A stretch of 64,000 nucleotides of DNA, from the sequence record NC_061443.1; one strand, given 5' to 3'. Below, in pieces: positions 22,861 through 58,327 of this stretch. Every line of letters starts with the position of its first letter. Within the stretch, counting starts at the first letter, position 1. The notes beneath the pieces are model-generated. The model saw only the letters and a program-made list of their open reading frames with translations, was not told the DNA's origin and did not search any database. The position numbers and the translations under genes are program-made.

Positions 22861-22915
22861 CTGCATATAATAGGACAAAATAGCTCTATGCTCGTAGCAG
22901 TCAAAATGATACTAT
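22861..22915 (+). promoter_or_regulatory. early promoter module 1
   Basis: box CTGCATATAATAGGACAAAATAGC, TG-A-TACTAT at 22910. Confidence 0.8.
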
Positions 22916-22966
22916 ATAGTCTCTGGCGCAATAACGCGCTCTACAACAACTGCCAAGGGGCACACT

Positions 22967-23338
22967 ATGACTAACTCATTCAATTCTGTTTGCGAAATCT
23001 TTGAAGCTATGAACGAATGCGCGAGCGATTCAGCATTCACCAAACAGTGTGGCTTCCCGTACCCTAAAGTAGAAATTTTGCAGTGTGGCCTGCAGGAAGA
23101 TTTAGGTGTGTACGCGTCGATGGCCGACGGCGTGAACTTCTTAATCGCAGATTCAGATGACCTGTTCTCTGAGCACCTTAAAGGTGACGGTGAGATCACT
23201 GTCTGCCGTATCGAAACACCTAACGGTGAGATGTTCGACGAACCTGAAGCTATCGTTACGCAGTTGGGGACATTTAACGACTTTGCAGAAGCATACGCAG
23301 CATTCACCGCTGCCGTAAACGCTGAACTCAACAAATAA
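22967..23338 (+). CDS. small acidic early protein
   Basis: AAGGGG RBS; about 22 D/E versus 5 K/R by hand count. Confidence 0.8.
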   Translation: MTNSFNSVCEIFEAMNECASDSAFTKQCGFPYPKVEILQCGLQEDLGVYASMADGVNFLIADSDDLFSEHLKGDGEITVCRIETPNGEMFDEPEAIVTQLGTFNDFAEAYAAFTAAVNAELNK

Positions 23339-23383
23339 TAGGTCAAAGGCGCTATAGAAATATAGCGCTGTTTATCGTACTAT
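23329..23383 (+). promoter_or_regulatory. early promoter module 2
   Basis: ..CAAATAATAGGTCAAAGGC box, TACTAT at 23378. Confidence 0.7.
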
Positions 23384-23434
23384 AAAGATGTTGCGCAATG
23401 ATGCGCACATACAACTTCTGCCAAGGGGCATACA

Positions 23435-23809
23435 ATGAAAGCAGCAAACTTTGATAAAGCATTTAACGCGAAAGATGAAGCAACCCTGAACGCATACGCA
23501 GCGCAGATTCTCGAAGCGCTCAACGCTCTGGGACGTAGCGACCTGAAGATTGAAATCATCTTCGGCACTGACCCGTTCAGCGAGTACCCTGACTTCGTTA
23601 ACGACCCCAACGGTTTTCGTATCAGCCAGAACGGCGAAGAAATTTTCGATATCTACACCCCGACAGAAAAACAAGTTGAAGGCGATGCGTCTGACGCTTT
23701 CATCTACGCTTCATGGGCCGAGGTCGAAGCTCCGTGGGGCAAGATCGTTTCTGATAATGACGTTGCTGAAATCGCAGCGCACCTGAACGAATCTATCCCA
23801 GCTCTGTAA
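23435..23809 (+). CDS. small acidic early protein
   Basis: AAGGGG RBS; about 23 D/E versus 8 K/R. Confidence 0.8.
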   Translation: MKAANFDKAFNAKDEATLNAYAAQILEALNALGRSDLKIEIIFGTDPFSEYPDFVNDPNGFRISQNGEEIFDIYTPTEKQVEGDASDAFIYASWAEVEAPWGKIVSDNDVAEIAAHLNESIPAL

Positions 23810-23867
23810 CGAACAACTGACTGCGGGGTTACGGCCCCGCTTATTACAACAACTGCCGAGGGGCACA

Positions 23868-23922
23868 GAGTAAATAACTGGCAGAAAGCGCCGTAGCAAT
23901 GCGGCGCATATCAACGTATTAT
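23868..23922 (+). promoter_or_regulatory. early promoter module 3
   Basis: GAGTAAATAACTGGCAGAAAGCG box, TATTAT at 23917. Confidence 0.65.
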
Positions 23923-23970
23923 GTAATCTCTAGCGCAATGACGCGCTCAACACTGAAAGAGGCAACAACA

Positions 23971-24216
23971 ATGTCAGAGAAACAAATCACTATCGACGTA
24001 ATCGCAGACGTAGCATCGCCAACAGAAGTTGTGTTTGAAGACGGCGAGACTTCTACTCAATGGCTCGCGCCGTTCGATCTGCGCCTGACTGTATCGCAGA
24101 ACTGCGGCCCTGCCGGCGTACCTGAAGTGAACATCATCGGCGATGAAGATAACTTGCGCCGCTTCTTGGCAGCGAACGATCAATTCGAAGACTCTGAGAT
24201 CGTAGACGTTATCTAA
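23971..24216 (+). CDS. small acidic early protein
   Basis: GAGG RBS before ATG 23971; about 17 D/E versus 4 K/R. Confidence 0.75.
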   Translation: MSEKQITIDVIADVASPTEVVFEDGETSTQWLAPFDLRLTVSQNCGPAGVPEVNIIGDEDNLRRFLAANDQFEDSEIVDVI

Positions 24217-24223
24217 CAAACAA

Positions 24224-24248
24224 AGAGCGGCGCTTCGGCGCTGCTTTT
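24224..24248 (+). terminator. intrinsic terminator
   Basis: GAGCGGCGC-TTCG-GCGCTGCTTTT. Confidence 0.75.
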
Positions 24249-24272
24249 CTATTTCTGACTGAGAAAGCCGCT

Positions 24273-24800
24273 ATGAAAAATCAATATCTCATTCTGCGTA
24301 TGCCTGCAACAAACTTCTACGACAAACAGTTTTTGATGCGAGGCTTCAACGCCGCGCGCATTGAGCAGGTCATTGGCGTTATCGTCATCATCGGCGACGA
24401 GCATTCACACTCGCTGAAAAACAGCATGTACCGCCTCGCAAAAATTCACGTCGAACAGCTTACATCTGACACGCAACAAAACTTAGTCAAGCTGCGCTGG
24501 TCGAGCGTAGACAGTAAACTCATTGAAGAAGGCATGACACGTATACCTACTGAGCTGACCGACGCCATACGTGCGATGCGTAACAATCGACTGTACTACG
24601 AAGTCGATACGACGATCCCGCAGGCGTTTCGTGAATGCCACACTGAATTTGATATGCCGACTGGCTCGCAGATGCGGGAGCGCATAAATAAACGCTTGCG
24701 TGACTCGCAGAAGAAAGACGTTCTTGATAAATTCACTGTAGAAGAATTGTTGCAGCACTTAAAGAAACGTACTGGCGCAGAGATTACAATCAAGCTGTAA
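24273..24800 (+). CDS. hypothetical protein
   Basis: ORF in operon. Confidence 0.75.
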   Translation: MKNQYLILRMPATNFYDKQFLMRGFNAARIEQVIGVIVIIGDEHSHSLKNSMYRLAKIHVEQLTSDTQQNLVKLRWSSVDSKLIEEGMTRIPTELTDAIRAMRNNRLYYEVDTTIPQAFRECHTEFDMPTGSQMRERINKRLRDSQKKDVLDKFTVEELLQHLKKRTGAEITIKL

Positions 24801-24863
24801 TAACGAATCAACGTGTGGCGTTACGGCGCCACATCGACACAACTTAATAGAGAGAATCAAATC

Positions 24864-25472: not shown

Positions 25473-25519
25473 ACATCTATCGCCTCGCACATGCGGGGCT
25501 TTTCTATTTGGAGAAAGCT

Positions 25520-25867: not shown

Positions 25868-25922
25868 GTAAACCCGGAGTCTGCCAAGCGCTGGTGGCCT
25901 CACTCACAACGAAGGAGTAACA

Positions 25923-26273: not shown

Positions 26274-26278
26274 TACCT

Positions 26279-26309
26279 AAGGGCTGCCATTGCTGGTGGC
26301 CCTTTTTCA
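26279..26309 (+). terminator. intrinsic terminator
   Basis: AGGGCTGCCA-TTGC-TGGTGGCCCT-TTTT. Confidence 0.75.
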
Positions 26310-26312
26310 TTT

Positions 26313-26321
26313 CTGTAAATA
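26313..26321 (+). promoter_or_regulatory. CTGTAAATA box
   Basis: directly after a terminator, 39 nt before ATG 26352. Confidence 0.6.
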
Positions 26322-26720: not shown

Positions 26721-26965
26721 TGACAACAATCGGAGCATCACTTGGTGCTCGCTTCGCTGCCACATCTTCGGAGCGTTGTTCTGCCCGCAAGAAAGCGCAG
26801 CCTCGTAATAAAACGCTCACGGCCGCAACGACTGCTGATATTCATAAAGCTGTCGAACGCCTGTCTATTAAACTGAATCTCACTCGCTCGAACACAATCG
26901 AACTGGCTATCAAGGAGCTGTGTGCGAAACACGGCATTGCAATAGGCGAACCTGATGGCGTCTGA
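26720..26965 (+). CDS. ribbon-helix-helix (CopG/Arc-like) DNA-binding protein candidate
   Basis: KTLTAATTADIHKAVERLSIKLNLTRSNTIELAIKEL fits the beta-helix-helix pattern. Confidence 0.55.
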   Translation: MTTIGASLGARFAATSSERCSARKKAQPRNKTLTAATTADIHKAVERLSIKLNLTRSNTIELAIKELCAKHGIAIGEPDGV

Positions 26966-27320
26966 CACTATCTACTGCCGATTGTACGGCGTTCAGTACC
27001 GTCTGAGAGTTACAGGCATAGACTTCTCACAATCACCTACTGCGTACACCGTAGAGCCTTGTGACCTGTTGCGTATGATGCCACGTATCATGGTGGGCGT
27101 TGCTTACGACATATATACGCCGTACAACGTACTCAAAGCGGGACGCGCAGACTTCAAAATCAAACTGATTGAGAAGGTGAGCGCAGACGAGTGGCGATAT
27201 TCATTTGTTGATTACGCAGGCAGACCGTTCAGCACTATTCTTAAACGGAGAAAGTATGACCATTGGTTTGATCAAAGTCCTAGGCCTAAAGGACAAGGCC
27301 CCAAAAGGGTTCGACCTTGA
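26955..27320 (+). CDS. hypothetical protein
   Basis: ORF in operon. Confidence 0.65.
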   Translation: MASDTIYCRLYGVQYRLRVTGIDFSQSPTAYTVEPCDLLRMMPRIMVGVAYDIYTPYNVLKAGRADFKIKLIEKVSADEWRYSFVDYAGRPFSTILKRRKYDHWFDQSPRPKGQGPKRVRP

Positions 27321-27888: not shown

Positions 27889-28193
27889 AGTATTTAGCCT
27901 GCATCGAGTTAAACACAAGAGAAGGCAACCTCAGAATGCCTATCTTGCCTCGCTGTGATATGCGTTCTTTTCTTCTCGATAGCCTCACAGGTATCAAGGT
28001 GCCTGTGACGTTCGATACCACAAATATCATCAAGATACACAACCAGACGTGCGGTAGCCTGCAAATGCTGACCGTGGCAGATATGATTCTATGGTCGTCG
28101 TTCGAGCCTGAAAGATTCACGTTATACATTGAACGGATATCTACTGCTATCGAGAACACAAGCGCCCAGCAGGCTGCTGAACTCTGCAAATAA
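27876..28193 (+). CDS. hypothetical protein
   Basis: ORF in operon. Confidence 0.6.
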   Translation: MGNLKYLACIELNTREGNLRMPILPRCDMRSFLLDSLTGIKVPVTFDTTNIIKIHNQTCGSLQMLTVADMILWSSFEPERFTLYIERISTAIENTSAQQAAELCK

Positions 28194-28238
28194 TTGGCTA
28201 AAATAGCCATTCAGTCTGATACGCTCCTGTGTTATACT
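28184..28238 (+). promoter_or_regulatory. early promoter module 4
   Basis: CTGCAAATAATTGGCTAAAATAGC box, TG-T-TATACT at 28233. Confidence 0.8.
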
Positions 28239-28283
28239 ATATGTGAGCGCAGTGCTCATACAACCCACGCTGAGGAGCGTATC

Positions 28284-28733: not shown

Positions 28734-28735
28734 GC

Positions 28736-30064: not shown

Positions 30065-30574
30065 ATGATACCAGAACTCACCCATATCTTTAACGTAATG
30101 ATGACCAGCCTGAAAGATATTCGCAGCGTTGATCGTCTCCATCTCATTAGCAAGAGCGCTGTACGCTTCCACCTGAAAGGCAAACAGTTCGACGTGCGGG
30201 GACACTTCCCGCTGTTCTCCGTACACGAAGTTGAAAGCCAGTGCTTGTCGTATTCGAAAGCCGCCAAAGAGATTGAAGCTCAACTCAATGGCGACCCTAT
30301 CGAAGAAATCGAAGACCACACCCATGACGTGGCTATGGATGACGTGTTGATTGCACATGTTGACAGCATGGAAGAAGATCGCGTTCGCGCATACAATGAA
30401 GAATGCGGCGGTCCTGATTTAGACCCGATCAACATGCAGCGCACTTGGCTCAAGACGCATTTCCTGCATATCGGGCACAACACACCAGACCTCCTCGAAA
30501 CAGTCCACATGATGGAGGGAACAGAACGCCGCAACGAACTGGCAGAAGCCGTTAAGGGGAAACTATGTTTCTAG
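30065..30574 (+). CDS. hypothetical protein
   Basis: AAGGA RBS. Confidence 0.75.
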   Translation: MIPELTHIFNVMMTSLKDIRSVDRLHLISKSAVRFHLKGKQFDVRGHFPLFSVHEVESQCLSYSKAAKEIEAQLNGDPIEEIEDHTHDVAMDDVLIAHVDSMEEDRVRAYNEECGGPDLDPINMQRTWLKTHFLHIGHNTPDLLETVHMMEGTERRNELAEAVKGKLCF

Positions 30575-30846
30575 CTTGGCTTAAATACTTGCGGAGTAAA
30601 CGCAACAATCAATTCATGATCGAAGTGACAGCGGCAATCGGCAAGTTAGACCAACGTGACCGTGACCTGCTATGTCGAGCATTCAACTTACCTGCAAGCG
30701 ATGACGGGTTGCTTACGTTAAGCAACATGAAGCGCAAGCAACTCGCCGTGCAGTGCAATCAATACTACACCCGTGTGTCGGGTAATAAGTGGAGCGTGTA
30801 CGAAGCGTTTCGCAAAGTCATTCACGTAGTAAGAACAGGAAAATAA
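30565..30846 (+). CDS. hypothetical protein
   Basis: ORF in operon. Confidence 0.7.
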   Translation: MFLAWLKYLRSKRNNQFMIEVTAAIGKLDQRDRDLLCRAFNLPASDDGLLTLSNMKRKQLAVQCNQYYTRVSGNKWSVYEAFRKVIHVVRTGK

Positions 30847-32036: not shown

Positions 32037-33097
32037 ACAAGACTGTTGGCCTGATGATTGATGAAGACGTAATGAACTGGCTGGACATGCTCATGCCTCA
32101 CGAACTGCGCCGCGTTATCGACGCTCTGAATAACATCGTGTACGCTCGTCGTCAGGAACTTACTGTCGAACGTCTGACCGAAGATGAAGACGTAGGCGCC
32201 CTGTCTCATAAAGAGCTGGAGATCATTCTACGTCACGCTTCCCCTAAGCATGAGTACGACACGTCCGTTCTGTCTAATGAGCAACTGCTCCGCTTGGCTA
32301 TTGACGCGCAATCCATCATCCAGTACACACTGCCGTGTCACTGTTCGCCTATCATGGTCAAACGTGCTTTTGCTAACGGTCTTACGTGCTCCCTGCTGGG
32401 TAGCTTCTCGAATCGTGCTGATATCATCATGGCTGTTCATCATTGGGAGTACGGCCTATCTAACATCTCACTTGATTCTATTACCGATAGCGATGCGCGT
32501 CCTGATGAACAGGGCCTGTACCTGTGCTATGACGAACACAAACAGATTCGCTATGGTCGTCTATTCAAGAATGCAAACGAAGGCTGGACCTTCCATGAAT
32601 CGTATTCGAATGGCGGCTCGACTTCATGGCTCGAAGCTGCGGAAGGTAAAGCACTTGATGACGATGACCTGCCGATCTGCTTGCTGTCTAATTGGGTATT
32701 CGTAGCACCCGACCAGTCTCCGTCAATCATTCGCAAAGAGACAGATATCAAACGTCTGTCTGACACACAACGCATCTTCCTCTACCTGCGTAGCCTGAGT
32801 CCTCACGTTAAGGCTGAAATCGTTACTCACTTCGACGGTGTGCTCGACAATCGCGTATTCACGTCTGTTGATCAGATTGGTCGTCTGACAGAAACTGATT
32901 GGCGCAATGCTGCTATCGCAATCGGTGAAGAAGAACGTGGTCAAGAAGGTAAACACTACTGGGATGATCGCAGTGCTTGGGCCTGTTTCGTCGCTGTGCT
33001 CAACTCTCTGTGTTATGACATGGAAACACGCGACTTCCAACCTCAGTACGAGTATCAGGCTAACGACGACACTATGGAAGAAGATAACAATGGCTAA
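32033..33097 (+). CDS. hypothetical protein with HeH-like module near the N-terminus
   Basis: GGAG RBS; LSHKELEIILRH...LSNEQLLRLAIDAQ. Confidence 0.8.
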   Translation: MNKTVGLMIDEDVMNWLDMLMPHELRRVIDALNNIVYARRQELTVERLTEDEDVGALSHKELEIILRHASPKHEYDTSVLSNEQLLRLAIDAQSIIQYTLPCHCSPIMVKRAFANGLTCSLLGSFSNRADIIMAVHHWEYGLSNISLDSITDSDARPDEQGLYLCYDEHKQIRYGRLFKNANEGWTFHESYSNGGSTSWLEAAEGKALDDDDLPICLLSNWVFVAPDQSPSIIRKETDIKRLSDTQRIFLYLRSLSPHVKAEIVTHFDGVLDNRVFTSVDQIGRLTETDWRNAAIAIGEEERGQEGKHYWDDRSAWACFVAVLNSLCYDMETRDFQPQYEYQANDDTMEEDNNG

Positions 33098-33623
33098 ATC
33101 ACTTGGCGTATACATGACTTACATTCTGCGCCACAAGCCGCAGGATATCGGAATTGCAATGGACACTCAAGGCTGGGTGTCTGTTCTGGACTTTTTGCAG
33201 AAAGCGAAGTATGCGAAACAGGTCACGCTCGAAATGCTGATTGCAGAAGTTGAGGCAGACGAGAAAGGCCGCTTCGAGTTCAACTCAAACAAGTCCAAGA
33301 TTCGTTGTGTTCAAGGCCACTCGGTAGAGAACGTCATCCTGAACCTTGAGCCGTTCACAGAACTTGAACCTCTGTATCACGGCACGGCAGAAAAGAACGT
33401 TGCTTCGATCATGCACGAAGGTATCACGAAACGCCGACGCAAACATGTTCACATTAGTCGTGAGCAAGAAACTGCCGAGAACGTTGGGCGCCGTCACGGT
33501 CTGCCTGTTGTGTTCGAGATCGACACATTGGCGATGATCACTCACGGCTACAAGTTCTACCGTGCAGAGAACGGTGTGATCTTAACGGACCACGTACCTT
33601 CCAGATACATCAAGCTGGTGTGA
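33090..33623 (+). CDS. kptA: RNA 2'-phosphotransferase, Tpt1/KptA family
   Basis: YILRH, MD..GWV, KGRFE, IRCVQGHS, LYHGT, I..EG....R.HVH, G.KFY.AENGV.L. Confidence 0.92.
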   Translation: MAKSLGVYMTYILRHKPQDIGIAMDTQGWVSVLDFLQKAKYAKQVTLEMLIAEVEADEKGRFEFNSNKSKIRCVQGHSVENVILNLEPFTELEPLYHGTAEKNVASIMHEGITKRRRKHVHISREQETAENVGRRHGLPVVFEIDTLAMITHGYKFYRAENGVILTDHVPSRYIKLV

Positions 33624-33624: not shown

Positions 33625-34026
33625 ATGGAAAAGACGTACATGACACATTGGGGATCGCGCTATGTGCGGTCCTCTTCCGGAAAGTGGTATTCAGTTCATG
33701 GGCGTGATGGTACTTGGGTAACGAATCGTTATGGTACGCAGTTCTATCGTAGCGGCTCTGAGGTATGGAGGGACATAACTCTTGCCGACCGTCAGTCGTT
33801 GGAACGTGAGTTAATCAAACGCACCAGTGAAGACTACACCGAGCAAAAGCGTAGGTACGAATACTGGGGACGATTGGTGAGAGCGATTGCTCGCTGTTCA
33901 GAAGAGGAGAAGAATGAGCATACGGCAGAACTTGCCGAGATGATCGAAGCGCTTAGACAGCAATTCTATGGACAGAAAGTGCAGCAATTAAGCACAACAT
34001 TGGACGAAATAGCCGTTAAATCATAA
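33625..34026 (+). CDS. hypothetical protein
   Basis: ORF in operon. Confidence 0.7.
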   Translation: MEKTYMTHWGSRYVRSSSGKWYSVHGRDGTWVTNRYGTQFYRSGSEVWRDITLADRQSLERELIKRTSEDYTEQKRRYEYWGRLVRAIARCSEEEKNEHTAELAEMIEALRQQFYGQKVQQLSTTLDEIAVKS

Positions 34027-34044
34027 GCTCGTTCGTGCTATAAT
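33990..34044 (+). promoter_or_regulatory. early promoter module 5
   Basis: AAGCACAACATTGGACGAAATAGC box, TG-C-TATAAT at 34039. Confidence 0.75.
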
Positions 34045-34093
34045 AGAGATGAACGCTAGACAGTCGTTTAGCTACTTACATGAGGATATGTAT

Positions 34094-35671
34094 ATGAAAA
34101 AGATTAAACACACTTTCCGTCTGACCGACTTGGTACACATCGCCAAACTTCCTGCAGGTATGTCCAAATTCCATGAAGGTTCGGATGCGATTGTTGTCGG
34201 CCGCAACGAAGATAGTGACCAGTATACCCTGCATGTTAAACATGTCGGTGAGCTTTCTTGGTATGAAGGTAAATCGTTGACGTTGATCAGCCATAACAAT
34301 GGCGAACTGCTTGACCAGTGGGAAGCGGGCGACTACGGCCGTGACAAGAAAAAGAAACGCAAGATCCCAAAAGAGCTGCGTAACTTCACGGCTATCCTGC
34401 CTGTTACCTGCAACGCCGATTGTTCGTTCTGCCCTGAGAAAGAAATGGAGCAGAAAGCCACTCAACAAGAGTGGCAAGACAATCTGATCTACAGCATCAA
34501 ACGTATGACGCTGAAAACCCGATTCGACCACATATCAATCTCAGGTGGCGAGCCTTCGTTGCGTTCGAAGTTCTTGTTCGAGACTATCGACCGCATTCAG
34601 AAAGAAACGCCAATCAAGAAAGTCGGCCTGACTTCTAACGGCTTCTTCCTTGAAAAGCAAAACAGCACGTTCGACTTCTTAGATCGCAACACTACGCCTG
34701 AGATGACTAGCAAGCTGTCGCATCTGAATATCAGTATGCACTCGTTTATGCGTGAACGTGCGAACAAGATCATGGGCGTGAACTACAAACAGACGCTGGA
34801 AGATTTGGTTCGTTTCCGTCGCCAGCTGGGTCGTGATGTTAGCTTTCACATCAATTTTGTGATCAACGACAAGACTGGCTCTATTACGGAAGAGTTCAAA
34901 ATGGCCGCTAACTTCATGCGAGCCAATCCGTTTATCGACGTTGTGTTCCGTGTTGACTACAACGATGTTGAACTGTCGAAAGCGTTGCGTGAATACGCTA
35001 TGGAATATGAAGCGTGGCAGGAAGCAAGCCGTATCGCAATCGCAACTCGCAAGAAATGCAAAGTGAAAGAGCCTAAAGCTCCGCACATCGTTCAGAAGTT
35101 TGACCGCTACTTCGGTGGCCAGAACCTTGCAGATGTTGAAAGCGCTTGGACTACAGGCTGCCCGTCATGTTTCACCCATGCGTCGAACCCTGTCAATAAC
35201 AGTCGCGCATATTTGAAAGCGTCCTCGTATGAACCGAACGAAGACGAAGAAGAATACACTGAGCTGGTGTATCACATGGACGGCACACTGTACTGGGATT
35301 GGACTCGTAATGACCCAGTGCCTGCGCCGCGTAGCAAGCGTTTTGACTTCGACATGAAAGACGAAGAAGATACGCAGCCTAAGAGCAAGAGCAAGAACAA
35401 AAAGACTGAACAAGATAAGGCGTGGGAACATGGTTCCGTAGCCGAGGCGATTAACGCCAATCGCTGCTCGTTCGGTCCTGCGGCACCTCATCATTGCTCT
35501 TACGATTCTACTGGTACTGCCGTGGCTCCGCAGACAGTCAAGCCGCAGCCTAAGACTGTTAAGGCGAAAACAGTCAAACCTTCTAAGAAAGTGAGCAAAG
35601 GTAAAGTTTCAACCACACCTGGCGGTTCCCCTGGCGTGTGTGGTTACGGTCATAGTCGTTGTGGTTACTAA
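34094..35671 (+). CDS. radical SAM protein with N-terminal extra domain and Cys/Gly-rich C-terminal tail
   Basis: CNADCSFC (CxxxCxxC) at 34409; ISGGEPSL; LTSNG; NISMH; GAGGA RBS favours ATG 34094. Confidence 0.85.
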   Translation: MKKIKHTFRLTDLVHIAKLPAGMSKFHEGSDAIVVGRNEDSDQYTLHVKHVGELSWYEGKSLTLISHNNGELLDQWEAGDYGRDKKKKRKIPKELRNFTAILPVTCNADCSFCPEKEMEQKATQQEWQDNLIYSIKRMTLKTRFDHISISGGEPSLRSKFLFETIDRIQKETPIKKVGLTSNGFFLEKQNSTFDFLDRNTTPEMTSKLSHLNISMHSFMRERANKIMGVNYKQTLEDLVRFRRQLGRDVSFHINFVINDKTGSITEEFKMAANFMRANPFIDVVFRVDYNDVELSKALREYAMEYEAWQEASRIAIATRKKCKVKEPKAPHIVQKFDRYFGGQNLADVESAWTTGCPSCFTHASNPVNNSRAYLKASSYEPNEDEEEYTELVYHMDGTLYWDWTRNDPVPAPRSKRFDFDMKDEEDTQPKSKSKNKKTEQDKAWEHGSVAEAINANRCSFGPAAPHHCSYDSTGTAVAPQTVKPQPKTVKAKTVKPSKKVSKGKVSTTPGGSPGVCGYGHSRCGY

Positions 35672-37559: not shown

Positions 37560-37823
37560 ATGGCTGTAGGCTTCGTAAAAGATGATGGCGTTAACGACAC
37601 CATCGAAGCTAACCTGAACAACGAGATTGACCGCGCCCGTGCAGAGCTGTTGGGTAAGGGCACTACGCATTGCGTTAACCCTGATTGCGGTGCAGAGATT
37701 CCTCTCATGCGCCGTGTAGCTATGCCGAATGCACGTTACTGTGTTACCTGTCAATCAAGCCACGATGGTTCGGCTGTTAGCCACTATAATCGTCGTGGTT
37801 CAAAAGATTCTCAACTGAGGTAA
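37560..37823 (+). CDS. TraR/DksA C4-type zinc finger protein (YbiI-like)
   Basis: HCVNPDCGAEIPLMRRVAMPNARYCVTCQS; N-terminal helix with acidic D..E. Confidence 0.85.
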   Translation: MAVGFVKDDGVNDTIEANLNNEIDRARAELLGKGTTHCVNPDCGAEIPLMRRVAMPNARYCVTCQSSHDGSAVSHYNRRGSKDSQLR

Positions 37824-41240: not shown

Positions 41241-41270
41241 ATAGGGAGGTCCTTAACGGGATCTCCCTAT
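41241..41270 (+). terminator. hairpin / intrinsic terminator
   Basis: ATAGGGAGGTCC-TTAACG-GGATCTCCCTAT. Confidence 0.6.
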
Positions 41271-41291
41271 GTCATTTCTGGAGTAAATTTT

Positions 41292-42272: not shown

Positions 42273-42305
42273 GGCTTGTTTCTGTAGGTAGCCCTGTGAT
42301 ACACT
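42250..42305 (+). promoter_or_regulatory. early promoter module 6
   Basis: CTGCAAATAACTGGACAAAATAAG box, TTGTTT -35, TG-A-TACACT at 42300. Confidence 0.8.
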
Positions 42306-42356
42306 AGATATGAGCAATATCGCTCGCTTATAACTAGACTGACTGAGGAAATCGCA

Positions 42357-44479: not shown

Positions 44480-45672
44480 CCGAAGACAGAATGAACATTG
44501 AACATATCCGTAGCGTTACAAAAGAAGTCTTCAAAAAAGGCACCGTGCAGCAACGCGATGCGCTACGTTCAATCGCTAACAAGGTGCTGGCGCCAAGCGT
44601 TATGTTTGCCTGTGAAGACACCGCCCCTGATGTAGAGACTGCGTACCGTCTGCTGGAAGATATTAAGTTCAGTGGCGACGGTACTCAGATGCTGCCTGCC
44701 GACGGCGTGTATGCACTCGATTCTATTCTGAATAAAACGTGGCGCGAAGACTTCTTTAGCGCCGTGTGTAACATGGCATTGACAATGTATGCCACTGACC
44801 CAGCTACTGTGGGTAAAGGCTACTGGCCAAAGAATCACAATGACTTTAACCGACTGATCACCCGCGCATTCATCTGGGTTGTGGCCCAGCACGGTCTGAT
44901 CAATCTACTCTCCCCGAGAGATGCTCATGTGGTAAGCCATACTCGTCTGCCGCAGTTCATGATTGCTACACAGGTCGTTGGACAAGACGAAGGTTGCTTG
45001 CGTCACTACACCCTGTACCAACCGCAGCAAGATACAGGCAGCATGGATTCCTACAATGTAGTGCCTGATAGCTACATCGAAAAAATTCGTGCAGACCGCC
45101 GGGCGAATCAGCCGCCTGAATACGAAGAAGCCGCAAACATGTCGTTCTCTGATCTTGCCGATCTGTGTGAGCGCCTGCACGTCATTGGTCCTGAGGCCAC
45201 GTTCCCTCCTTGCAAATGCAAAGTGGAAGATGATTGTGAATGTGACGAAGATGAATACCAGTCGCGTGAAGATTTTGATGAAGACCAGGAAGAGCTACTC
45301 GAAACTTTCTACAATAAGTTCGGCTTCCCTGACGATAGCTCCGACGAGCCAGAAGAAGAAAAGTGGCTTGAAGGTATCTCACTCATGGAAGTTGAAGTCG
45401 ATCTGCCGACCGTGCGACTGCCTACGCCTGAACTCAACACTATGCGCAACAATAGCCGCATGAAGAAGCCTCACCAAAAAGCGCGTCGTGAGAAAATCAG
45501 ACTTACTCCTGAACAACAAATCTGGCATAAGGTTGATACGGATCCGCTGTCTATTGATCGTCGTTTCGCTATCAGTCTCGTATCTCGCCACACATGCGGC
45601 GTTAATCGTGCTGTCGCTACGCAGCGTGAAGCTATGGCAGTCGCTGCTGCTTTGATGGAAGTCAGCGAATAA
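44476..45672 (+). CDS. hypothetical protein with acidic tract
   Basis: long ORF; GAGGAAGG RBS. Confidence 0.8.
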   Translation: MTEDRMNIEHIRSVTKEVFKKGTVQQRDALRSIANKVLAPSVMFACEDTAPDVETAYRLLEDIKFSGDGTQMLPADGVYALDSILNKTWREDFFSAVCNMALTMYATDPATVGKGYWPKNHNDFNRLITRAFIWVVAQHGLINLLSPRDAHVVSHTRLPQFMIATQVVGQDEGCLRHYTLYQPQQDTGSMDSYNVVPDSYIEKIRADRRANQPPEYEEAANMSFSDLADLCERLHVIGPEATFPPCKCKVEDDCECDEDEYQSREDFDEDQEELLETFYNKFGFPDDSSDEPEEEKWLEGISLMEVEVDLPTVRLPTPELNTMRNNSRMKKPHQKARREKIRLTPEQQIWHKVDTDPLSIDRRFAISLVSRHTCGVNRAVATQREAMAVAAALMEVSE

Positions 45673-45717
45673 CTGGTCAGAATAGCGCTTCTTCGTGAGG
45701 CGCTTCTATGATATAAT
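45663..45717 (+). promoter_or_regulatory. early promoter module 7
   Basis: CAGCGAATAACTGGTCAGAATAGC box, TG-A-TATAAT at 45712. Confidence 0.8.
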
Positions 45718-45785
45718 CATAGATAGAGCAATAGTGCTCTCAACGTTATCTCAACCATACGTTTAACAACGGGAATTGTCATACT

Positions 45786-47390: not shown

Positions 47391-47929
47391 TGGAATTTTT
47401 GATTAAGCCTGATGCAGACCGTTTCCCGAACTTCATTCCTCCTGCTCGCGCTACAGCCAAAGCTGCTGGCTTCGACCTGTTCGCTCAGGAAGATATGATC
47501 ATCACGGGCGACACTGTGCTGTTTGACTTGGGCTTCCGCACCAAGGTGCCAAAAGACCACGTTGCTATCATCTTCCCTCGCTCAGGTCTGGGCGCTAAGT
47601 TCCACGTTGAGCTGTCGAACACTAACGGCGTTATCGACGAAGACTACACCGGCCTCTGGATGGCAGCGCTGCATCTGGGCGGTAAAGGCACTAAGGTCGA
47701 ACAACTCGATTGGCTGTCTGCTGCCTACGAGCAATCCAGCTTCAAAGAAATCCCTGACATTGACGACGACGAAGACCAGAAAGCGTTGTTGATCAAGCGT
47801 GGCGATGCGTTCGCGCAAGTGCTGTTCTTCCCTGTGCCTGATGTTGAAGTCGTTATCACGCACGAAGAACTGCCTGAAACTGATCGCGGTGAGGGTGGCT
47901 TCGGTTCTACCACGAAGGCCAGTGCCTAG
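47390..47929 (+). CDS. dut: trimeric dUTPase with an insertion between motifs III and IV
   Basis: AAGFDL, PRSGLG, GVIDEDYTG, GDAFAQ, RGEGGFGST. Confidence 0.95.
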   Translation: MEFLIKPDADRFPNFIPPARATAKAAGFDLFAQEDMIITGDTVLFDLGFRTKVPKDHVAIIFPRSGLGAKFHVELSNTNGVIDEDYTGLWMAALHLGGKGTKVEQLDWLSAAYEQSSFKEIPDIDDDEDQKALLIKRGDAFAQVLFFPVPDVEVVITHEELPETDRGEGGFGSTTKASA

Positions 47930-48140
47930 CCTATTGACAGTAGTGCTCATTGCTTACTACGTTGTTGGTACTATTCACTTTGTCCTGGAAGTTCGTTCTA
48001 TACCTGACGACGACCCAAGCATAGTGATGTTCAACCATCACATGGACACTGAGTCCCACGCGCAGTTGCTTTGGTCAGCGACAAAACTTTTGCTGTATGT
48101 GTTATTCATTCACATTCCGTGCTGGATATTCCGCATATAG
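47922..48140 (+). CDS. small membrane protein
   Basis: GTG start overlapping the dut stop; two hydrophobic segments. Confidence 0.55.
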   Translation: MPSLLTVVLIAYYVVGTIHFVLEVRSIPDDDPSIVMFNHHMDTESHAQLLWSATKLLLYVLFIHIPCWIFRI

Positions 48141-48198
48141 TGATATCGTTCACACGAGGGGCCTTACGTGGGCTCCTCATTATCGTAATATAAATGCT

Positions 48199-48513
48199 AT
48201 GGGAAAGAAAACTTATCTGCTGCCACGCGAACGCCCTAGCCCTCTGCCGAACTTACGTGCCTATCTCGCGTATCTCGCCCGGAAGCCTAACGCTCACCGC
48301 GAAGTATTAGAAACGTATTGTAATGCAAGTCTAGCTCAAATGCGCCGCGAACGGTTTTTCGTCGGTAAGCTCTTTGCCTACAAAGTGTATACGAAATCGA
48401 ATAAGCTCGCGTACACGGTTGTCTGGATTGACCCATACAACTACGACTGCCTTGTTCTCAACCACCAAAGGAGATGTGTAGAGTTTAAAAACTTATACGG
48501 CCTGCTATTATAG
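48199..48513 (+). CDS. basic hypothetical protein
   Basis: ORF; weak RBS. Confidence 0.55.
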   Translation: MGKKTYLLPRERPSPLPNLRAYLAYLARKPNAHREVLETYCNASLAQMRRERFFVGKLFAYKVYTKSNKLAYTVVWIDPYNYDCLVLNHQRRCVEFKNLYGLLL

Positions 48514-48551
48514 TTGGGTCCTAGCGCCTTCACACTAGGGGAAATATTCCG

Positions 48552-49232
48552 ATGATAACTGTCCTTAACAATCGTACCGACGAGGTAATGAAACGCCTGA
48601 ACGTAGCAGTATGGGTTTGCGTTGTGTTCGCTTTCGCTGTCTTAATAGCGCTGCGTATCTCACCAGCATTCGCCAGTATGTCTACAGGCCCTGACAACGC
48701 CATTGATGTATCTTCCGCCGTGTCACTCGATCCCTCCAATCGTGTGGCGACAAAATACAAGGAGATCGAAAAGGCAGTAGCAGTCAAAGACGAACGAAGG
48801 CCAAAACGCTATGTAACCCGCGAGCGCCTCCGACAACTTTATGCGCACTTGCCTCATCCTTCTGACTTAGGCAAGCAGATTGATTTGGCCGCAGAGAAGT
48901 ATAGTGTAGATGCAAAACTGCTTCTCTCTATCTGCGTCTCCGAGTCGCATCTTCGTGCAAAGGTCAGAAACAAGTCCGGCGCTACAGGTCTGTGTCAAAT
49001 CATGCCTGACATGCACGGACGTTCTGTGCGGGAACTTATGGACTACCGAGTCAATGTTGATCAGGCAGCCCAAATAGTTGCGTTACTAAACAAGCAGTGC
49101 AAGGGACGACGCGCCTGCGTCATTCAATCTTACAACACTGGTTGGGGAGCATATTTGAAGGGCGTTCGTTCGCCTCAATATTTAGCTAAAGTTCAGACCG
49201 AGTATCGCCGCAAGCATACTCCTTCTTCCTGA
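48552..49232 (+). CDS. SLT-type lytic transglycosylase with N-terminal TM segment
   Basis: A..Y.VD..LL..I..SES (catalytic Glu), GATGLCQIMP, SYNTG; hydrophobic N-terminus. Confidence 0.85.
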   Translation: MITVLNNRTDEVMKRLNVAVWVCVVFAFAVLIALRISPAFASMSTGPDNAIDVSSAVSLDPSNRVATKYKEIEKAVAVKDERRPKRYVTRERLRQLYAHLPHPSDLGKQIDLAAEKYSVDAKLLLSICVSESHLRAKVRNKSGATGLCQIMPDMHGRSVRELMDYRVNVDQAAQIVALLNKQCKGRRACVIQSYNTGWGAYLKGVRSPQYLAKVQTEYRRKHTPSS

Positions 49233-49926: not shown

Positions 49927-49960
49927 AACGGGAGACCTTAACTGGTTTCCCGTTTTTCAT
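49927..49960 (+). terminator. intrinsic terminator
   Basis: AACGGGAGACC-TTAACT-GGTTTCCCGTT-TTT. Confidence 0.75.
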
Positions 49961-49989
49961 TTCTGCGCAAATTTTTAAGGACTACCACA

Positions 49990-50931
49990 ATGACTAAAAT
50001 GATCAACATGCCGTTTGCTACTTTTTCTAGTCGTAGCTCATTCTTCTCGGCAAAAGTTCGTGAACTCGATCTCCAGAACGTCTGGAGCTACGTTGTATCA
50101 AACAACAAACCACAATGGCAAGGCGACCCATTGCTGCACCACATGCACTATCATTCTACCGAGCACATGAAGCAAGTAACTGCTCTCGCCCTGTGGCTGC
50201 TGAATGAAGAAGCCGAACAACCATGGCAGTATGATCTGGGTGCGCTGCCGCTGGCTGTCGCCTGTATGTTCCACGATATGCACCATTCTCTTGGCCGCTT
50301 GAGCGATGCAGTCAACGTGCGTACTGCACAAGACGCTTTCAAACAATATGTGACCGTGTGTGAAGACCCACGCATTATCGACCAGCAGGAAATCATTCTC
50401 GAACTGATAGGCATTACGGAATTCCCGTACATGAAGAACCGCCAGCCGAAGAATCTGATTGAGCGTTGCATTCGTGATGCGGATATCCTATACGGTATGC
50501 AGGACGATGCACTGGACGTTGTGATGTTCGCACTACGCCGTGAGGTGAATCGTGCTGTGAACAAGCCAACGCACTTCACGCCAGAACAGTGGGCAGTAGG
50601 TCGTGTTGACTTCCTCATGTCTGTTGAGATGTATACGCCTGCAGCAAGTGCGATCATGGACTGGCTGTTGGCAAAAGACAACGATCACAATCATCAGTCT
50701 AAGATTGATAGCTGGATGCGGGATAACGTTATCTTCCGTGATACGTCAGCACACAAGCTCCAGGCCAATGATGTGTTGTTTATCGACACTGAGGCAGACA
50801 GTACGCCGAAGCGCCGTTTGATTGAACGTGTTGAGTCAGTACATCCGTACATCAACTTCTATTTCCACGACGGCGAAACTATCTCGCTGCGTGACGGTGA
50901 GAGTTGTGTGGTCTGCGAAAGACGCAAATAA
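49990..50931 (+). CDS. HD-domain metal-dependent phosphohydrolase
   Basis: YHSTEH, ACMFHDMHH, IRDAD. Confidence 0.8.
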   Translation: MTKMINMPFATFSSRSSFFSAKVRELDLQNVWSYVVSNNKPQWQGDPLLHHMHYHSTEHMKQVTALALWLLNEEAEQPWQYDLGALPLAVACMFHDMHHSLGRLSDAVNVRTAQDAFKQYVTVCEDPRIIDQQEIILELIGITEFPYMKNRQPKNLIERCIRDADILYGMQDDALDVVMFALRREVNRAVNKPTHFTPEQWAVGRVDFLMSVEMYTPAASAIMDWLLAKDNDHNHQSKIDSWMRDNVIFRDTSAHKLQANDVLFIDTEADSTPKRRLIERVESVHPYINFYFHDGETISLRDGESCVVCERRK

Positions 50932-50975
50932 TAGGCTGAAATAGACGTATACGAACCACGTGCCTGTGATATAAT
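50922..50975 (+). promoter_or_regulatory. early promoter module 8
   Basis: ACGCAAATAATAGGCTGAAATAGA box, TG-A-TATAAT at 50970. Confidence 0.75.
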
Positions 50976-51007
50976 ACGCATAGGCACACATAATAGAGAG
51001 AACTCGA

Positions 51008-54961: not shown

Positions 54962-54969
54962 GGTGACAT

Positions 54970-55269
54970 ATGCCACGTGAACAAATCCTGATGAATGATG
55001 TTGCCATCGTCCTGACTATGAGTGAGCGCCGTGCGTTCCTTGGTCCGAAAGCAGACGGCTTTGTGTACCTCCCATCGAAGGAGGCCCTTACGAAGTTTGA
55101 GGCGCATATCAAGAAGTATGGCAGTTCTGATGACTATGCGTTTATCGAACACCGTGAACTGCACTCTCTGAACTCTGCGGGTATTGTAGCTATCGCTCAT
55201 GCTGTCGAGTCTGACTCTGAGCGCCCATGGCTGTGGACGAAAGAAGACTTCCGCGTCAAGCTGTGGTAA
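54970..55269 (+). CDS. hypothetical protein
   Basis: GAGGTG RBS. Confidence 0.75.
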   Translation: MPREQILMNDVAIVLTMSERRAFLGPKADGFVYLPSKEALTKFEAHIKKYGSSDDYAFIEHRELHSLNSAGIVAIAHAVESDSERPWLWTKEDFRVKLW

Positions 55270-55322
55270 GCATAAAACTGGCTAAAATCGCGGTATCAAT
55301 CTGAGTCTGTCTGTGATACAAT
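55268..55322 (+). promoter_or_regulatory. early promoter module 9
   Basis: AAGCATAAAACTGGCTAAAATCGC box, TG-A-TACAAT at 55317. Confidence 0.8.
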
Positions 55323-55374
55323 AGAAGCGTAGCTTGTGCTGCGCTTTCTTACACTACGTCTGAGGAGACAACTG

Positions 55375-55836: not shown

Positions 55837-55837
55837 T

Positions 55838-56518: not shown

Positions 56519-56709
56519 TGAAAACGATTAACGAACAGGTCAAAGAATTGAAACAGCGCGGCGTGCTTATTATCGAAGAACACCAGAAACACACGCTGCC
56601 TGATTTAACCTTCACGCTAGATTGCATGTGCCTGTCACACACGAAGCGAGAAGTAGAGACAACCACGCGCGGCCGCGTTGTTAAGATTCGACTGACTAAC
56701 GTTCACTAA
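56518..56709 (+). CDS. small hypothetical protein
   Basis: TAATG overlap. Confidence 0.6.
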   Translation: MKTINEQVKELKQRGVLIIEEHQKHTLPDLTFTLDCMCLSHTKREVETTTRGRVVKIRLTNVH

Positions 56710-56722
56710 CTTTTGTGGTCTT

Positions 56723-56797
56723 GGCCCGCCCGTCCAGCAATGCTCACCCCCAATGAGGTGTCTCGCGCAGAGGCATGACGGTCACCGGGTCCTTTTT
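56723..56797 (+). ncRNA. candidate structured RNA (multi-stem junction)
   Basis: nested pairings GGCCCG/CGGGTC, CCGTC/GACGG, ATGC/GCAT enclosing CACC/GGTG and CTC/GAG, then TTTTT. Confidence 0.35.
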
Positions 56798-56853
56798 AGA
56801 GCGCACTTCCTAGTACGCTGTATAAAGTAAAACACAATCAACAGGAGGCTGTT

Positions 56854-57252
56854 ATGAAGTTCAACGATGTGTCCACTAAAGCTCAGGTGGTTCTTATGGC
56901 GAGTGCATTCGGTGGTGCGGTGGAAGTTCTGTCCCGTTCAATGGACGATGAAGGTCGCAAGTTTCTGGAAGTTGCGTTGCAGCGTGTCGGTCTAACCGTT
57001 GGTGAGTTCCAAACTCTTATCAATGACCTCGACGATCCTACCAGTCGAGAGATCGTTGCTGTTATGGAAACAGCGCAGGCAGAAGATTCTGAGCGTGATG
57101 CAGAAGCGCAACGCCAACGTCTGGCTGATGAAGAGGACGATGAAGACGAAGAAGCTGCCGACGACTCTGATACAGACGCAGACGGTTGGCAGGACCTGCA
57201 TGAAGATCGCATATGTCTCATATGTAACCGTGAATACTGCGTCTGTCACTAA
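56854..57252 (+). CDS. acidic protein with C-terminal Cys/His motif
   Basis: AGGAGG RBS; CLICNREYCVCH. Confidence 0.8.
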   Translation: MKFNDVSTKAQVVLMASAFGGAVEVLSRSMDDEGRKFLEVALQRVGLTVGEFQTLINDLDDPTSREIVAVMETAQAEDSERDAEAQRQRLADEEDDEDEEAADDSDTDADGWQDLHEDRICLICNREYCVCH

Positions 57253-57253
57253 T

Positions 57254-57308
57254 CTGCATAAATCTGGACAAAACGACGGTTGTCTCAAATAGCTGCCTGA
57301 ACTATACT
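57254..57308 (+). promoter_or_regulatory. early promoter module 10
   Basis: CTGCATAAATCTGGACAAAACGAC box, TTGTCT-17-TATACT. Confidence 0.8.
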
Positions 57309-57315
57309 ATATAGA

Positions 57316-57505
57316 CAGCGAGACAACGTTCTCTCTGAATGCCTTTGTAATTGCTTTGACCATGTGTTTTCTTTTTCCCGGCACATGGTCCTTTTTAAAG
57401 ACGGCTTCCAGCGAGGCTGCTTTAAAAAGGGTTCGATACCCTTTGAGCGCGTCGGGCTTTACGCGGTTTTCGCCTTACGTGCTCTCATGCTAAACCGCAA
57501 AGGAA
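57316..57505 (+). ncRNA. structured 5' leader or ncRNA with possible pseudoknot
   Basis: perfect 9-bp and 11-bp inverted repeats, an alternative hairpin, and a loop GCGGTTT complementary to AAACCGC just before the RBS. Confidence 0.5.
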
Positions 57506-57511
57506 ATTGAA

Positions 57512-58225
57512 ATGCCTACTACTTCACGTCCTAAGACAGAAGACAAGTTCTCCCGTGCTCGCGCTGCTAAGAACTCACCTGAACGTCAGGCAGCGGCTGC
57601 TAAGAAAACTCCACGAGGTCCTTCCTCGGTTCGTCCTAAATCAACGGCAGATCGTGAGCCTAAGATTCGTGACGAGGAGCGTGTGTACAATCTCGTACAT
57701 GCAATTCTGAGCGCGTGGAAAGCTGATGTGGGACATGCCGAAAACACGGCAGCATCTGCTGGTATCATCAAAGTGTCTCGTCGTAAAATTGAAGGTGCAT
57801 TGCGTGACCTCAAGAATACACGCTTCACTAAAATCCCGACGCTCATTAATGATATCCTGACAGGCTCTGATATCTGCGACGAGTTCGGCATGTGGGTGTA
57901 CGTCGAGCACGATAGTCCTGATTGGATTTTCGTCCGTCTGCCTGATAACAGCACACCTGTGATTCGTGCCGATATCAGTTACGAAAAGACTGGCGAAAGG
58001 TCCGCGTCTGTCACAACGTCCAGTGAAGCACTCATGGAAACGTTCGACGACAATGAAGACGAAATCGAGATCGAAATCTTCGACTGCACTGAAAGCGATA
58101 TTGAAGACCTCGAAGCTGCTGAGATGCGCAAGCGTCTGATCGATGCGAAAATCATCAATCCAGAAGCTGCCCCGAAGCTGTCACGCAATGACTTAATGAA
58201 GCTCTGCGCGTACTACAGCGCATAA
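57512..58225 (+). CDS. hypothetical protein with basic N-tail and C-terminal HeH-like module
   Basis: AAGGA RBS; IEDLEAAEMRKRLIDA...LSRNDLMKLC. Confidence 0.8.
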   Translation: MPTTSRPKTEDKFSRARAAKNSPERQAAAAKKTPRGPSSVRPKSTADREPKIRDEERVYNLVHAILSAWKADVGHAENTAASAGIIKVSRRKIEGALRDLKNTRFTKIPTLINDILTGSDICDEFGMWVYVEHDSPDWIFVRLPDNSTPVIRADISYEKTGERSASVTTSSEALMETFDDNEDEIEIEIFDCTESDIEDLEAAEMRKRLIDAKIINPEAAPKLSRNDLMKLCAYYSA

Positions 58226-58271
58226 GCAATAACGAGCAGGCAGCACGTACACTGCCTGCTATCTGCGAAGT

Positions 58272-58327
58272 ATGCAGAAAACTGGACAAAATCGTGGTTG
58301 TTATCTGACGACCACCTATGCTATACT
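58272..58327 (+). promoter_or_regulatory. early promoter module 11
   Basis: ATGCAGAAAACTGGACAAAATCGT box, TTGTTA -35, TG-C-TATACT at 58322. Confidence 0.8.

Follow-up and report, generated by a model that had tools for sequence, protein, structure and literature searches.

Most jumbo phages lack an RNA polymerase (RNAP) of their own, and the way in which such phages take over the host enzyme during the first minutes of infection is, to our knowledge, poorly known; detailed work has dealt with T4 and with phiKZ-type phages. The early promoters of T4 have the arrangement 'UP/-35/TGn/-10' with extra consensus regions, and are enhanced by the injected ADP-ribosyltransferase Alt, which acts on Arg265 of the alpha subunit (PMC2988021). 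In E. coli, the UP element has the consensus sequence AAAWWTWTTTTNNNAAA, with subsites centred near -52 and -42 (PMC2412878, PMC2613000). Early promoters whose lineage-specific consensus goes beyond the host elements, and promoter/stem-loop cassettes repeated among ORFans, are both known from T4-type phages (PMC2988021, PMC2839356); in these promoter early stem-loop (PeSL) cassettes, a stop codon lies upstream, followed by an early promoter, a stem-loop that often sits in the -35/-10 interval and acts as a terminator, and then the Shine-Dalgarno sequence (SD) and ATG (Arbiol et al. 2010, Comeau et al. 2014; PMC2839356, PMC4122927). Phage early promoters that join host core elements to an upstream region for the alpha subunit's C-terminal domain (alpha-CTD), in PeSL-like cassettes, are a known design. 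Here, we describe promoters of Erwinia phage pEa_SNUABM_2 (NC_061443.1, genus Alexandravirus), a jumbo phage of 265,442 bp, in which a conserved upstream box precedes a sigma70-type -10. The stretch that we analysed, hereafter the window, comprises 64,000 nucleotides and is identical to positions 186,001-250,000 of this genome. These promoters are distinct from the known design in their vestigial -35, their far more constrained upstream module with invariant G/C positions, and their regular 5' stem-loop.

A fixed upstream box on extended -10 promoters

The original prediction described eleven promoters in the window that share a 24-nt box at a fixed distance from the -10. All eleven boxes were found where it had placed them, and a search with its consensus allowing up to three mismatches gave 6 matches against 0.05 expected. 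As a non-circular test, a 34-nt matrix (-66 to -33) was trained on six other phages only and run with a cut-off of 14 bits on both strands of the whole pEa_SNUABM_2 genome. The matrix reached 14 bits at exactly 13 positions, all on the + strand: the eleven boxes of the window and two sites beyond it, one at genome position 256,830, where the topoisomerase II large subunit is encoded next downstream, and one at 260,924. The total of eleven copies has therefore to be raised to 13. The 13 boxes score from 17.6 to 42.9 bits, while the top score on the - strand is about 11 bits and all other + strand positions remain below 14. Each of the 13 sites has a TAnnnT sequence 48-50 nt downstream of the start of the box, and a T at -35. 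The separation is equally sharp when viewed from the core promoter, since the pattern TGnTA[TCA][AT][AC]T matches 96 times in the genome, 10 times with a box, and the other 86 matches score below -9.9, with none in between. All 13 copies lie at genome 208.8-261 kb, in an ORFan-rich arm whose proteins are almost without Pfam matches, in agreement with the confinement originally proposed.

The geometry of the eleven window copies also held: the distance from the start of the box to the TAnnnT is 49 nt in eight, 50 nt in two and 48 nt in one, the extended TG is usual (at -15/-14 in 8/11), and the three best -35 hexamers are TTGTTT (42276), TTGTCT (57280) and TTGTTA (58298), as had been described. 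The preceding stop codon falls inside the box in 6/11 copies, four times as the TAA of the box itself, which bears out the overlap that had been pointed out. A generic -35/-10 scan found fewer sites than in shuffled sequence and caught only 2/11 box promoters; because it shows no enrichment, the box with its extended -10 is the only recognisable host-type promoter class of the region. No description of these promoters was found in the searchable literature.

Conservation was analysed with the -10 hexamer set at -12 to -7, which places the 24-nt box at -61 to -38, on 72 convincing copies (76 raw matches), all on the coding strand, from seven phages of five genera: pEa_SNUABM_2, Alexandra, Dickeya AD1, SNUABM_7, Y3, Yoloswag and Dickeya JA29. 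The box-to-(-10) spacing is 49 in 61 of the 76 raw matches. Based on the information content of the 72 copies, the conserved block runs from -66 to -36 and is longer than 24 nt. Its distal part includes A-65, A-64 and T-62, followed by G-59 (86%), C-58 (99%), A-57 (99%), A-55 (93%) and W-54 (100%); the centre is formed by T-50 (74%), G-49 (100%) and G-48 (89%), and the proximal part by Y-46 (96%) and R-45 (100%), which are spread over C/T and A/G, A-44 to A-42 (94-100%) and T-41 (74%). Three A/T tracts, centred near -64, -53.5 and -42.5, are arranged about one helical turn apart, with short G/C islands between them and pyrimidine-purine steps at their flanks. The upstream block carries about 30 bits of information, a figure inflated by site selection.

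Downstream of the block, T-35 (99%) and G-33 (62%) are followed by a 17-bp spacer to the -10 and by T-17 (75%), R-16 (77%), T-15 (86%), G-14 (82%) and TAtAaT. T-12, A-11 and T-7 are present in all 11 window copies and all 72 clade copies, where they were required during selection. Columns -65 to -62, -35, -33 and -17 to -14 played no part in site selection, which makes them independent evidence; what they outline is an extended -10 promoter (TRTGn) for a primary sigma, whose -35 is vestigial (TnG). A -35 close to TTGACA at 16-18 bp was not found, as only T-35 and G-33 are retained. The proposal of sigma70-type extended -10 promoters that carry an upstream element in a fixed place (about -61 to -38) is sustained, although the 24-nt length is too short, given that AAnT (-65 to -62) and T-35/G-33 are conserved as well. 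Likewise, the -35, originally called weak or absent, is weak but not absent, T-35 occurring in 99% of the 72 copies. In the 11 close pairs of orthologous promoters that were compared, the promoter is conserved as a whole, and per-position identity does not separate the box from the spacer.

The box architecture is clade-specific, being found in the five named genera and in a Yersinia phage lineage, whose member fHe-Yen9-02 has it with a distinct variant of the centre. In IMG/VR, a pattern scan gave at least 120 stretches; among the matches listed, those of at least 28 bits lie on contigs of about 110-270 kb, which correspond to isolates of the group and a few metagenomic relatives, and the other contigs have at most 20 bits. 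In 185,579 bacterial and archaeal species genomes, 99 stretches were found, scattered over unrelated taxa, against about 70 expected by chance, and no stretch of at least 22 bits came from Enterobacterales. Only three contigs in that scan, all from one metagenome-assembled genome (Raoultibacter sp. CGS1Y3-bin67), exceeded 35 bits, and all the others had at most about 26 bits. These contigs (JAVWLC010000385.1, JAVWLC010000023.1 and JAVWLC010000226.1) carry box promoters of 35-42 bits that are orthologous to those of Alexandravirus, and are almost certainly mis-binned jumbo-phage DNA. The regulon of a host activator, with a class I or class II site common to host promoters, was rejected, as none appeared in these species genomes with a pattern that demanded the exact geometry and had a looser host regulon outside its reach.

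Proposed recognition of the box

No RNAP was found among the annotated genes of the whole pEa_SNUABM_2 genome, nor was an RNAP domain found in ten of its largest proteins without informative annotation, which include a family A DNA polymerase, an intein-containing C5 methylase and a VgrG-like spike. Promoters of a phage multisubunit or virion RNAP of the phiKZ or N4 type were rejected on this basis, and also because the literature puts the group among RNAP-less phages: Y3, AD1 and their relatives are jumbo phages without an RNAP that rely on the host enzyme and have a gene for a factor of the sigma70 family (PMC7412058, PMC13282480, PMC7824862). The + strand genes of pEa_SNUABM_2 run from 186 kb through the end of the record to 43 kb, and the - strand arm (43-186 kb) contains the structural and replication genes. 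The product of gp45 (genome 28354-30483, + strand), annotated as a hypothetical protein, is a C-5 cytosine DNA methylase split by an intein (Hint/intein splicing domains).

We lean towards the interpretation that the sequences are early promoters of an RNAP-less jumbo phage, at which the box docks the alpha-CTDs of the host on the sigma70 holoenzyme; the early timing, the alpha-CTD contact, the role of bending and the function of the hairpins are what we infer. In such a mechanism, a phage without its own RNAP would capture the host sigma70 holoenzyme at the start of infection, and the box would be the upstream half of the promoter (about -66 to -36), recruiting RNAP via its two alpha-CTDs, while the phased A-tracts would bend or wrap the upstream DNA. 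Docking and bending would offset the weak -35 and give highly competitive promoters. The 5' stem-loop, followed by the SD and ATG, would probably stabilise the 5' end of the RNA.

Docking of the alpha-CTDs is the best explanation because the A-tracts are in register with the subsites of the UP element. When AAAWWTWTTTTNNNAAA is slid along the box, the best matches are obtained at shifts -1 and 0, with 8.5 and 7.9 of 14 positions (background 4.4, standard deviation 1.7), and the consensus sequences of the proximal and distal subsites peak within 1 bp. The location also agrees, the tracts at -53.5 and -42.5 lying within -60 to -38 in the subsite register. The box thus resembles E. coli UP elements of the rrnB P1 type in its position and register relative to the -10/-35, in having two tracts about one helical turn apart, and in the A residues of the non-template strand at -57 to -55 and -44 to -42; the invariant A-57, A-55 and A-44 to A-42 (93-100%) fall where AAAWWTWTTTTNNNAAA has A on the same strand. 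It differs from them in that WGK(N) stands in place of the T-tract (-50 to -47), there is conservation of G-59, C-58 and G-49, a third tract is present at -65 to -62, and the conservation is much tighter than in natural UP elements. The Y-46/R-45 pattern would fit a deformable step at the edge of a rigid A-tract, and suits a structural constraint at least as well as direct base readout. Of the two readers originally put forward, the alpha-CTD stands as the best explanation, while no observation made here demonstrates that there is an injected activator or an 'undescribed early-transcription system'. The contrast drawn with UP elements, which lack a GG core, is weaker than it looks, given that GG is only partly conserved and the constraint at -46/-45 is Y/R: G-49 alone is invariant, and G-48 is replaced by T in Dickeya JA29 and in part of the Yersinia phage copies.

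The early promoters of T4 are a close parallel, as they also serve a phage without an RNAP, use the host sigma70, combine an extended -10 with an upstream alpha-CTD region and extra phage-specific consensus positions, and stand in many copies before small early genes. Nevertheless, T4 early promoters have an excellent -35, in place of the vestigial TnG seen here, and their upstream region consists of A/T-rich UP elements, whereas the box has invariant G/C positions, about 30 bits and a spacing fixed within 1 bp. The middle promoters of T4 (MotA/AsiA) likewise pair a phage-specific element with a host-type -10 or extended -10, but the MotA box takes the place of the -35, with its centre at -30, whereas the present element lies at -66 to -36 and T-35/G-33 are retained (PMC2988021). 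A MotA-type middle promoter, or another known form of sigma appropriation, was rejected because of this location. Known host sites were compared by eye, by their consensus sequences, and were also rejected: a sigma54 site has its -24/-12 spacing wrong by 2 bp, a CRP site matches at 6 of 10 positions but is centred at -52.5 on the wrong face, Fis and IHF sites do not fit, and the recognition elements of a MarA/SoxS marbox are 2 bp too far apart.

Several observations weigh against docking of the alpha-CTDs as the whole explanation. Only about 8 of 14 positions agree with the UP consensus, and G-59, C-58, G-49 and G-48 are absent from that consensus, which prefers T at -50 to -47. These G/C positions depend on the strand (G, never C), as is more usual where a protein reads the bases directly than in a spacer, and the information content of the upstream block, even if inflated by selection, is far above that of natural UP elements. 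Additionally, AD1 and JA29, which have a common host strain (Dickeya solani MK10), use two central hexamers, each internally uniform: TGG[A/T]C in 10/10 copies of AD1 and TGTCC in 7/8 copies of JA29, TGTCCA being the reverse complement of TGGACA. G-48 is present in 10/10 copies of AD1 and 0/8 of JA29 (Fisher p 2e-5), and C-47 in 2/10 and 8/8, respectively. Two uniform optima are not readily explained by a single host polymerase. Finally, no transcription start site, transcriptome or expression data for the clade were found in the searchable literature, so that 'early' is our own deduction.

Some of these features would be expected if the box were the site of a sequence-specific, co-evolving protein encoded by the phage, either a virion-delivered activator or an early-made shut-off regulator, a reading that we consider a serious but less likely rival. 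Such a protein would read GCA...(W)GK(N)YR from two consecutive major grooves, located between the tracts on which the alpha-CTDs dock; a shut-off regulator would occupy the docking region, and the A-tracts would be part of its site or lie beside it. The invariant, strand-specific G-59/C-58 and G-49/G-48 are indeed about 10 bp apart, in successive major grooves on one face, and the very high information content, the lineage-specific central hexamers (in AD1 and JA29 on one strain, with a further variant in the Yersinia phage), the absence of the element from the bacterial species genomes save for the mis-binned phage contigs, which speaks against a host regulon, and the precedent of injected T4 proteins that tune early promoters all point in the same direction. 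Nevertheless, no candidate protein was found: 38 of the approximately 71 proteins of the putative early arm (32 of them hypothetical) contain no DNA-binding domain above the curated threshold in Pfam, and neither do five larger ones rescanned in PHROGs, the matches being restricted to a DksA/TraR zinc finger, Tpt1, a radical SAM protein, UvdE and domains of unknown function. Moreover, one genome tolerates several centres (e.g., TAGGCT and CTGGAC in SNUABM_2 and Y3), the constraint at -46/-45 is for a pyrimidine-purine step and not for a fixed base, the core promoter (TRTGn and a good -10) should work without an activator, and the register with the UP subsites would be a coincidence.

Promoter units, hairpins and cassette layout

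The eleven units of the window, all on the + strand, are listed below with their scores in the other-phage matrix; transcription start sites (TSS) are predicted.

22857-22940, +, unit before gp251 (38.3 bits): AAnT 22857-22860, box 22861-22884, -35 22887-22892 (TATGCT), TG 22907-22908, -10 22910-22915 (TACTAT), TSS ~22922, 5' hairpin 22925-22940; an intrinsic terminator adjoins the unit on its upstream side.
23325-23410, +, unit before gp252 (26.1 bits): box 23329-23352, -10 23378-23383 (TACTAT, no TG), TSS ~23390, 5' hairpin 23388-23410; spacer inverted repeat and T-run at 23348-23369 (-12.9 kcal/mol, z -4.2), listed as terminator-like; the stop codon of gp251 is the TAA of the box.
23864-23961, +, unit before gp253 (17.6 bits): box 23868-23891, the most degenerate of the window, -10 23917-23922 (TATTAT), TSS ~23929, 5' hairpin at about 23933-23948; spacer hairpin GCGCCG..CGGCGC (-15.5 kcal/mol, z -4.3), with a compensatory change in Alexandra.
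28180-28259, +, unit before gp262 (41.0 bits): box 28184-28207, a perfect match to the originally proposed consensus, TGTG 28228-28231, -10 28233-28238 (TATACT), TSS ~28245, 5' hairpin 28243-28259; upstream stop codon inside the box.
33986-34072, +, unit before gp274, a radical SAM protein (29.7 bits): box 33990-34013, -10 34039-34044 (TATAAT) with TG, TSS ~34051, 5' hairpin 34055-34072; the upstream coding sequence ends in the spacer, at 34026.
42246-42325, +, unit before gp290 (42.9 bits): box 42250-42273, -35 42276-42281 (TTGTTT), TGTG 42295-42298, -10 42300-42305 (TACACT, spacing 50), TSS ~42312, 5' hairpin 42312-42325; stop codon of the UvdE gene inside the box.
45659-45740, +, unit before gp297 (32.7 bits): box 45663-45686, -10 45712-45717 (TATAAT) with TG, TSS ~45724, 5' hairpin 45725-45740; spacer hairpin AGCGC..GCGCT (-12.8 kcal/mol, z -4.5); the upstream stop codon is the TAA of the box.
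50918-50982, +, unit before gp305 (28.6 bits): box 50922-50945, TGTG, -10 50970-50975 (TATAAT, spacing 48), TSS ~50982; short leader of 26 nt in which no convincing 5' hairpin was seen; the upstream stop codon is the TAA of the box.
55264-55344, +, unit before gp312 (33.5 bits): box 55268-55291, TGTG, -10 55317-55322 (TACAAT), TSS ~55329, strong 5' hairpin 55327-55344 (-12.5 kcal/mol).
57250-57395, +, unit ~200 nt before gp316 (35.7 bits): box 57254-57277, -35 57280-57285 (TTGTCT), -10 57303-57308 (TATACT, no TG), TSS ~57315, 5' hairpin 57316-57337.
58268-58351, +, unit before gp317 (38.0 bits): box 58272-58295, -35 58298-58303 (TTGTTA), spacer hairpin, TG, -10 58322-58327 (TATACT, spacing 50), TSS ~58334, 5' hairpin 58332-58351 (z -4.7), whose stem is altered by compensatory changes in Alexandra and AD1.

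The predicted transcripts open with a stem-loop at about +1 to +25, with a mean z of -1.63; segments taken at random from these loci have -0.15 (Mann-Whitney p 4e-13). The stems differ between phages by compensatory changes, e.g., GGTGC..GCACC in pEa_SNUABM_2 and GACGCA..TGCGTC in Alexandra and AD1. A strong inverted repeat, often followed by a T-run, is also found between the box and the -10 in about 28% of the copies, again with compensatory changes (GCGCCG..CGGCGC and GCGCCA..TGGCGC); this spacer repeat looks like a terminator for upstream read-through. Rfam and tRNA scans of the window gave no match and, since the Rfam scan was empty, the hairpins of the box promoters belong to no known RNA family. 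Downstream of the promoter at 57254, an 11-bp stem with a U-run is found at about 57358-57395, approximately 45-80 nt after the predicted start and 120 nt before the next open reading frame (ORF). The segment 57315-57395 (+ strand) folds with -24.9 kcal/mol (z -2.1), and Alexandra, AD1 and Y3 retain the beginning of the transcript; the segment is a candidate for a short non-coding RNA or an attenuated leader. As a separate observation, the 19-nt sequence CTCGATAGGCAATGCGCCA occurs twice in tandem upstream of gp246 (window 17690-17740, + strand), and the related GATAGAGCAATGCGCGGCC lies upstream of gp22 (genome 15,640-15,665); the 19-nt sequence resembles ATAGAGCAAT, with which several box-promoter transcripts start.

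The layout of these units, i.e., a repeated intergenic unit with an upstream stop codon, a sigma70 early promoter, a stem-loop, the SD and ATG, placed among ORFans and endowed with a lineage-specific consensus, is that of the PeSL cassettes, and the ORFan-rich location holds for all 13 copies (genome 208.8-261 kb). PeSLs have a near-consensus -35/-10 and an upstream region that is merely AT-rich, whereas the upstream box is the distinctive part here; furthermore, the most regular hairpin lies downstream of the start site, at the 5' end of the RNA.

It might be argued from this resemblance that the conservation results mainly from the duplication or recombination of cassettes, which, as has been proposed for T4-type PeSLs, would act as homology patches in gene shuffling, and that most positions of the box have no role in recognition. 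The layout and the location among ORFans agree with this, as does the finding that homology resumes exactly at the cassette in 5/19 unaligned segments in the comparison with Y3 and in 5/17 in that with SNUABM_7, both distant relatives, where about 0.4 would be expected; moreover, conservation is higher in the promoter regions (0.75-0.9) than in the coding sequence upstream of them (0.52). However, the invariant columns of the box are interleaved with free ones (-56, -51 and -47) and the adjoining 20-nt spacer varies between copies, and this column-wise conservation implies selection on individual positions and not recent copying. Five genera and a sixth lineage have retained the same columns, and 0/8 indels relative to the close relative Alexandra end at the cassette. 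We therefore regard cassette spread as a very unlikely source of most of the conservation.

A second motif, neighbouring genes and implications

A second promoter-like motif, CTGTAAATA, has 27 exact copies in the genome, where about 2 are expected by our own arithmetic, and its degenerate form has 41, where Markov-1 resamples gave 16-20. Its orientation is always that of the genes, it lies mostly 20-70 nt upstream of start codons, and it precedes replication and recombination genes, including those for the annotated sigma factor, SSB, ligase and the clamp loader. It is reminiscent of the T4 late sequence TATAAATA, and probably represents a middle class that depends on a phage factor. The occurrences in the window are as follows.

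932-940, exact CTGTAAATA.
12187-12195, exact CTGTAAATA.
18438-18446, exact CTGTAAATA.
26313-26321, exact CTGTAAATA.
63845-63853, exact CTGTAAATA.
13268, CTGTAAACA.
43580, CTGTAAACA.
63449, CTGTAAACA.

Strong + strand intrinsic terminators at 24223-24258, 26279-26314, 41241-41280 and 49927-49964 are followed by the tail TTTC(A/T)ATTTCTG, which in one case runs straight into CTGTAAATA; the tail may be a terminator/promoter junction of the second class. In JA29 (e.g., locus 30569-30630 and 34011-34070), the -10 region of several box promoters is CTGTAAACT or CTGTAAAAT, which overlaps the second-class motif CTGTAAA, and only 3/8 copies carry TG at -15/-14; in this lineage, the two promoter classes may share elements.

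The product of gp242 (window 12228-13265) was assigned, with E 1e-156, to a PHROG family that bears the annotation RNA polymerase sigma factor; it has no Pfam match and no sequence match to solved structures, and its sigma label is based on PHROGs and the literature only, in which the proteins of relatives were placed in the sigma70 family by HHpred (PMC7412058). If gp242, and not the host sigma70, read the box promoters, these would be middle and not early promoters. We hold this to be extremely improbable: their elements are those of a primary sigma (TRTGnTAtAaT, TnG at -35 and a 17-bp spacer), CTGTAAATA is a better candidate for the phage factor, and some promoter class must be readable by the unmodified host polymerase at time zero.

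The putative early arm also encodes gp279 (window 37560-37823, + strand), a small zinc-finger protein of the DksA/TraR type (Pfam PF01258, E 1e-11), which also has annotated counterparts in AD1, Y3, Yoloswag, JA29 and the Yersinia phage. Proteins of this type bind the secondary channel of RNAP. The box promoters have A/T-rich discriminators (-6 to -3), and given these, gp279 might conceivably depress host rRNA promoters and spare those of the phage. A Tpt1/KptA RNA 2'-phosphotransferase (E 7e-44), a radical SAM protein and a UvdE UV endonuclease are encoded in the same arm, with an annotated RNA ligase nearby; this RNA-repair-like set may counter host defences that cleave tRNA or other RNA. 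It is encoded at the following window positions.

11334-11801, gp240.
33090-33623, gp272.
34094-35671, gp274.
41292-42272, gp289.

RefSeq leaves gaps of 290 and 622 nt without annotation at window 26965-27256 and 47929-48552; in the equivalent of the second gap, Alexandra has annotated small genes, and ORFs of 113 and 138 aa exist.

The box promoters form a clean, computable class of probable early promoters, with 13 sites per genome and no intermediate scores, and can be used in annotation to recognise operon starts, early genes and mis-binned phage contigs, as well as the temporal classes of Erwinia and Dickeya biocontrol phages. If the alpha-CTD alone reads the box, it would be a natural high-information site for alpha-CTD binding and bending, and would provide a strong promoter part of compact size for Enterobacterales. 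Were it read by a phage protein, the box would reveal a new takeover mechanism, an undescribed control of early transcription common to at least six lineages of RNAP-less jumbo phages of Enterobacterales.

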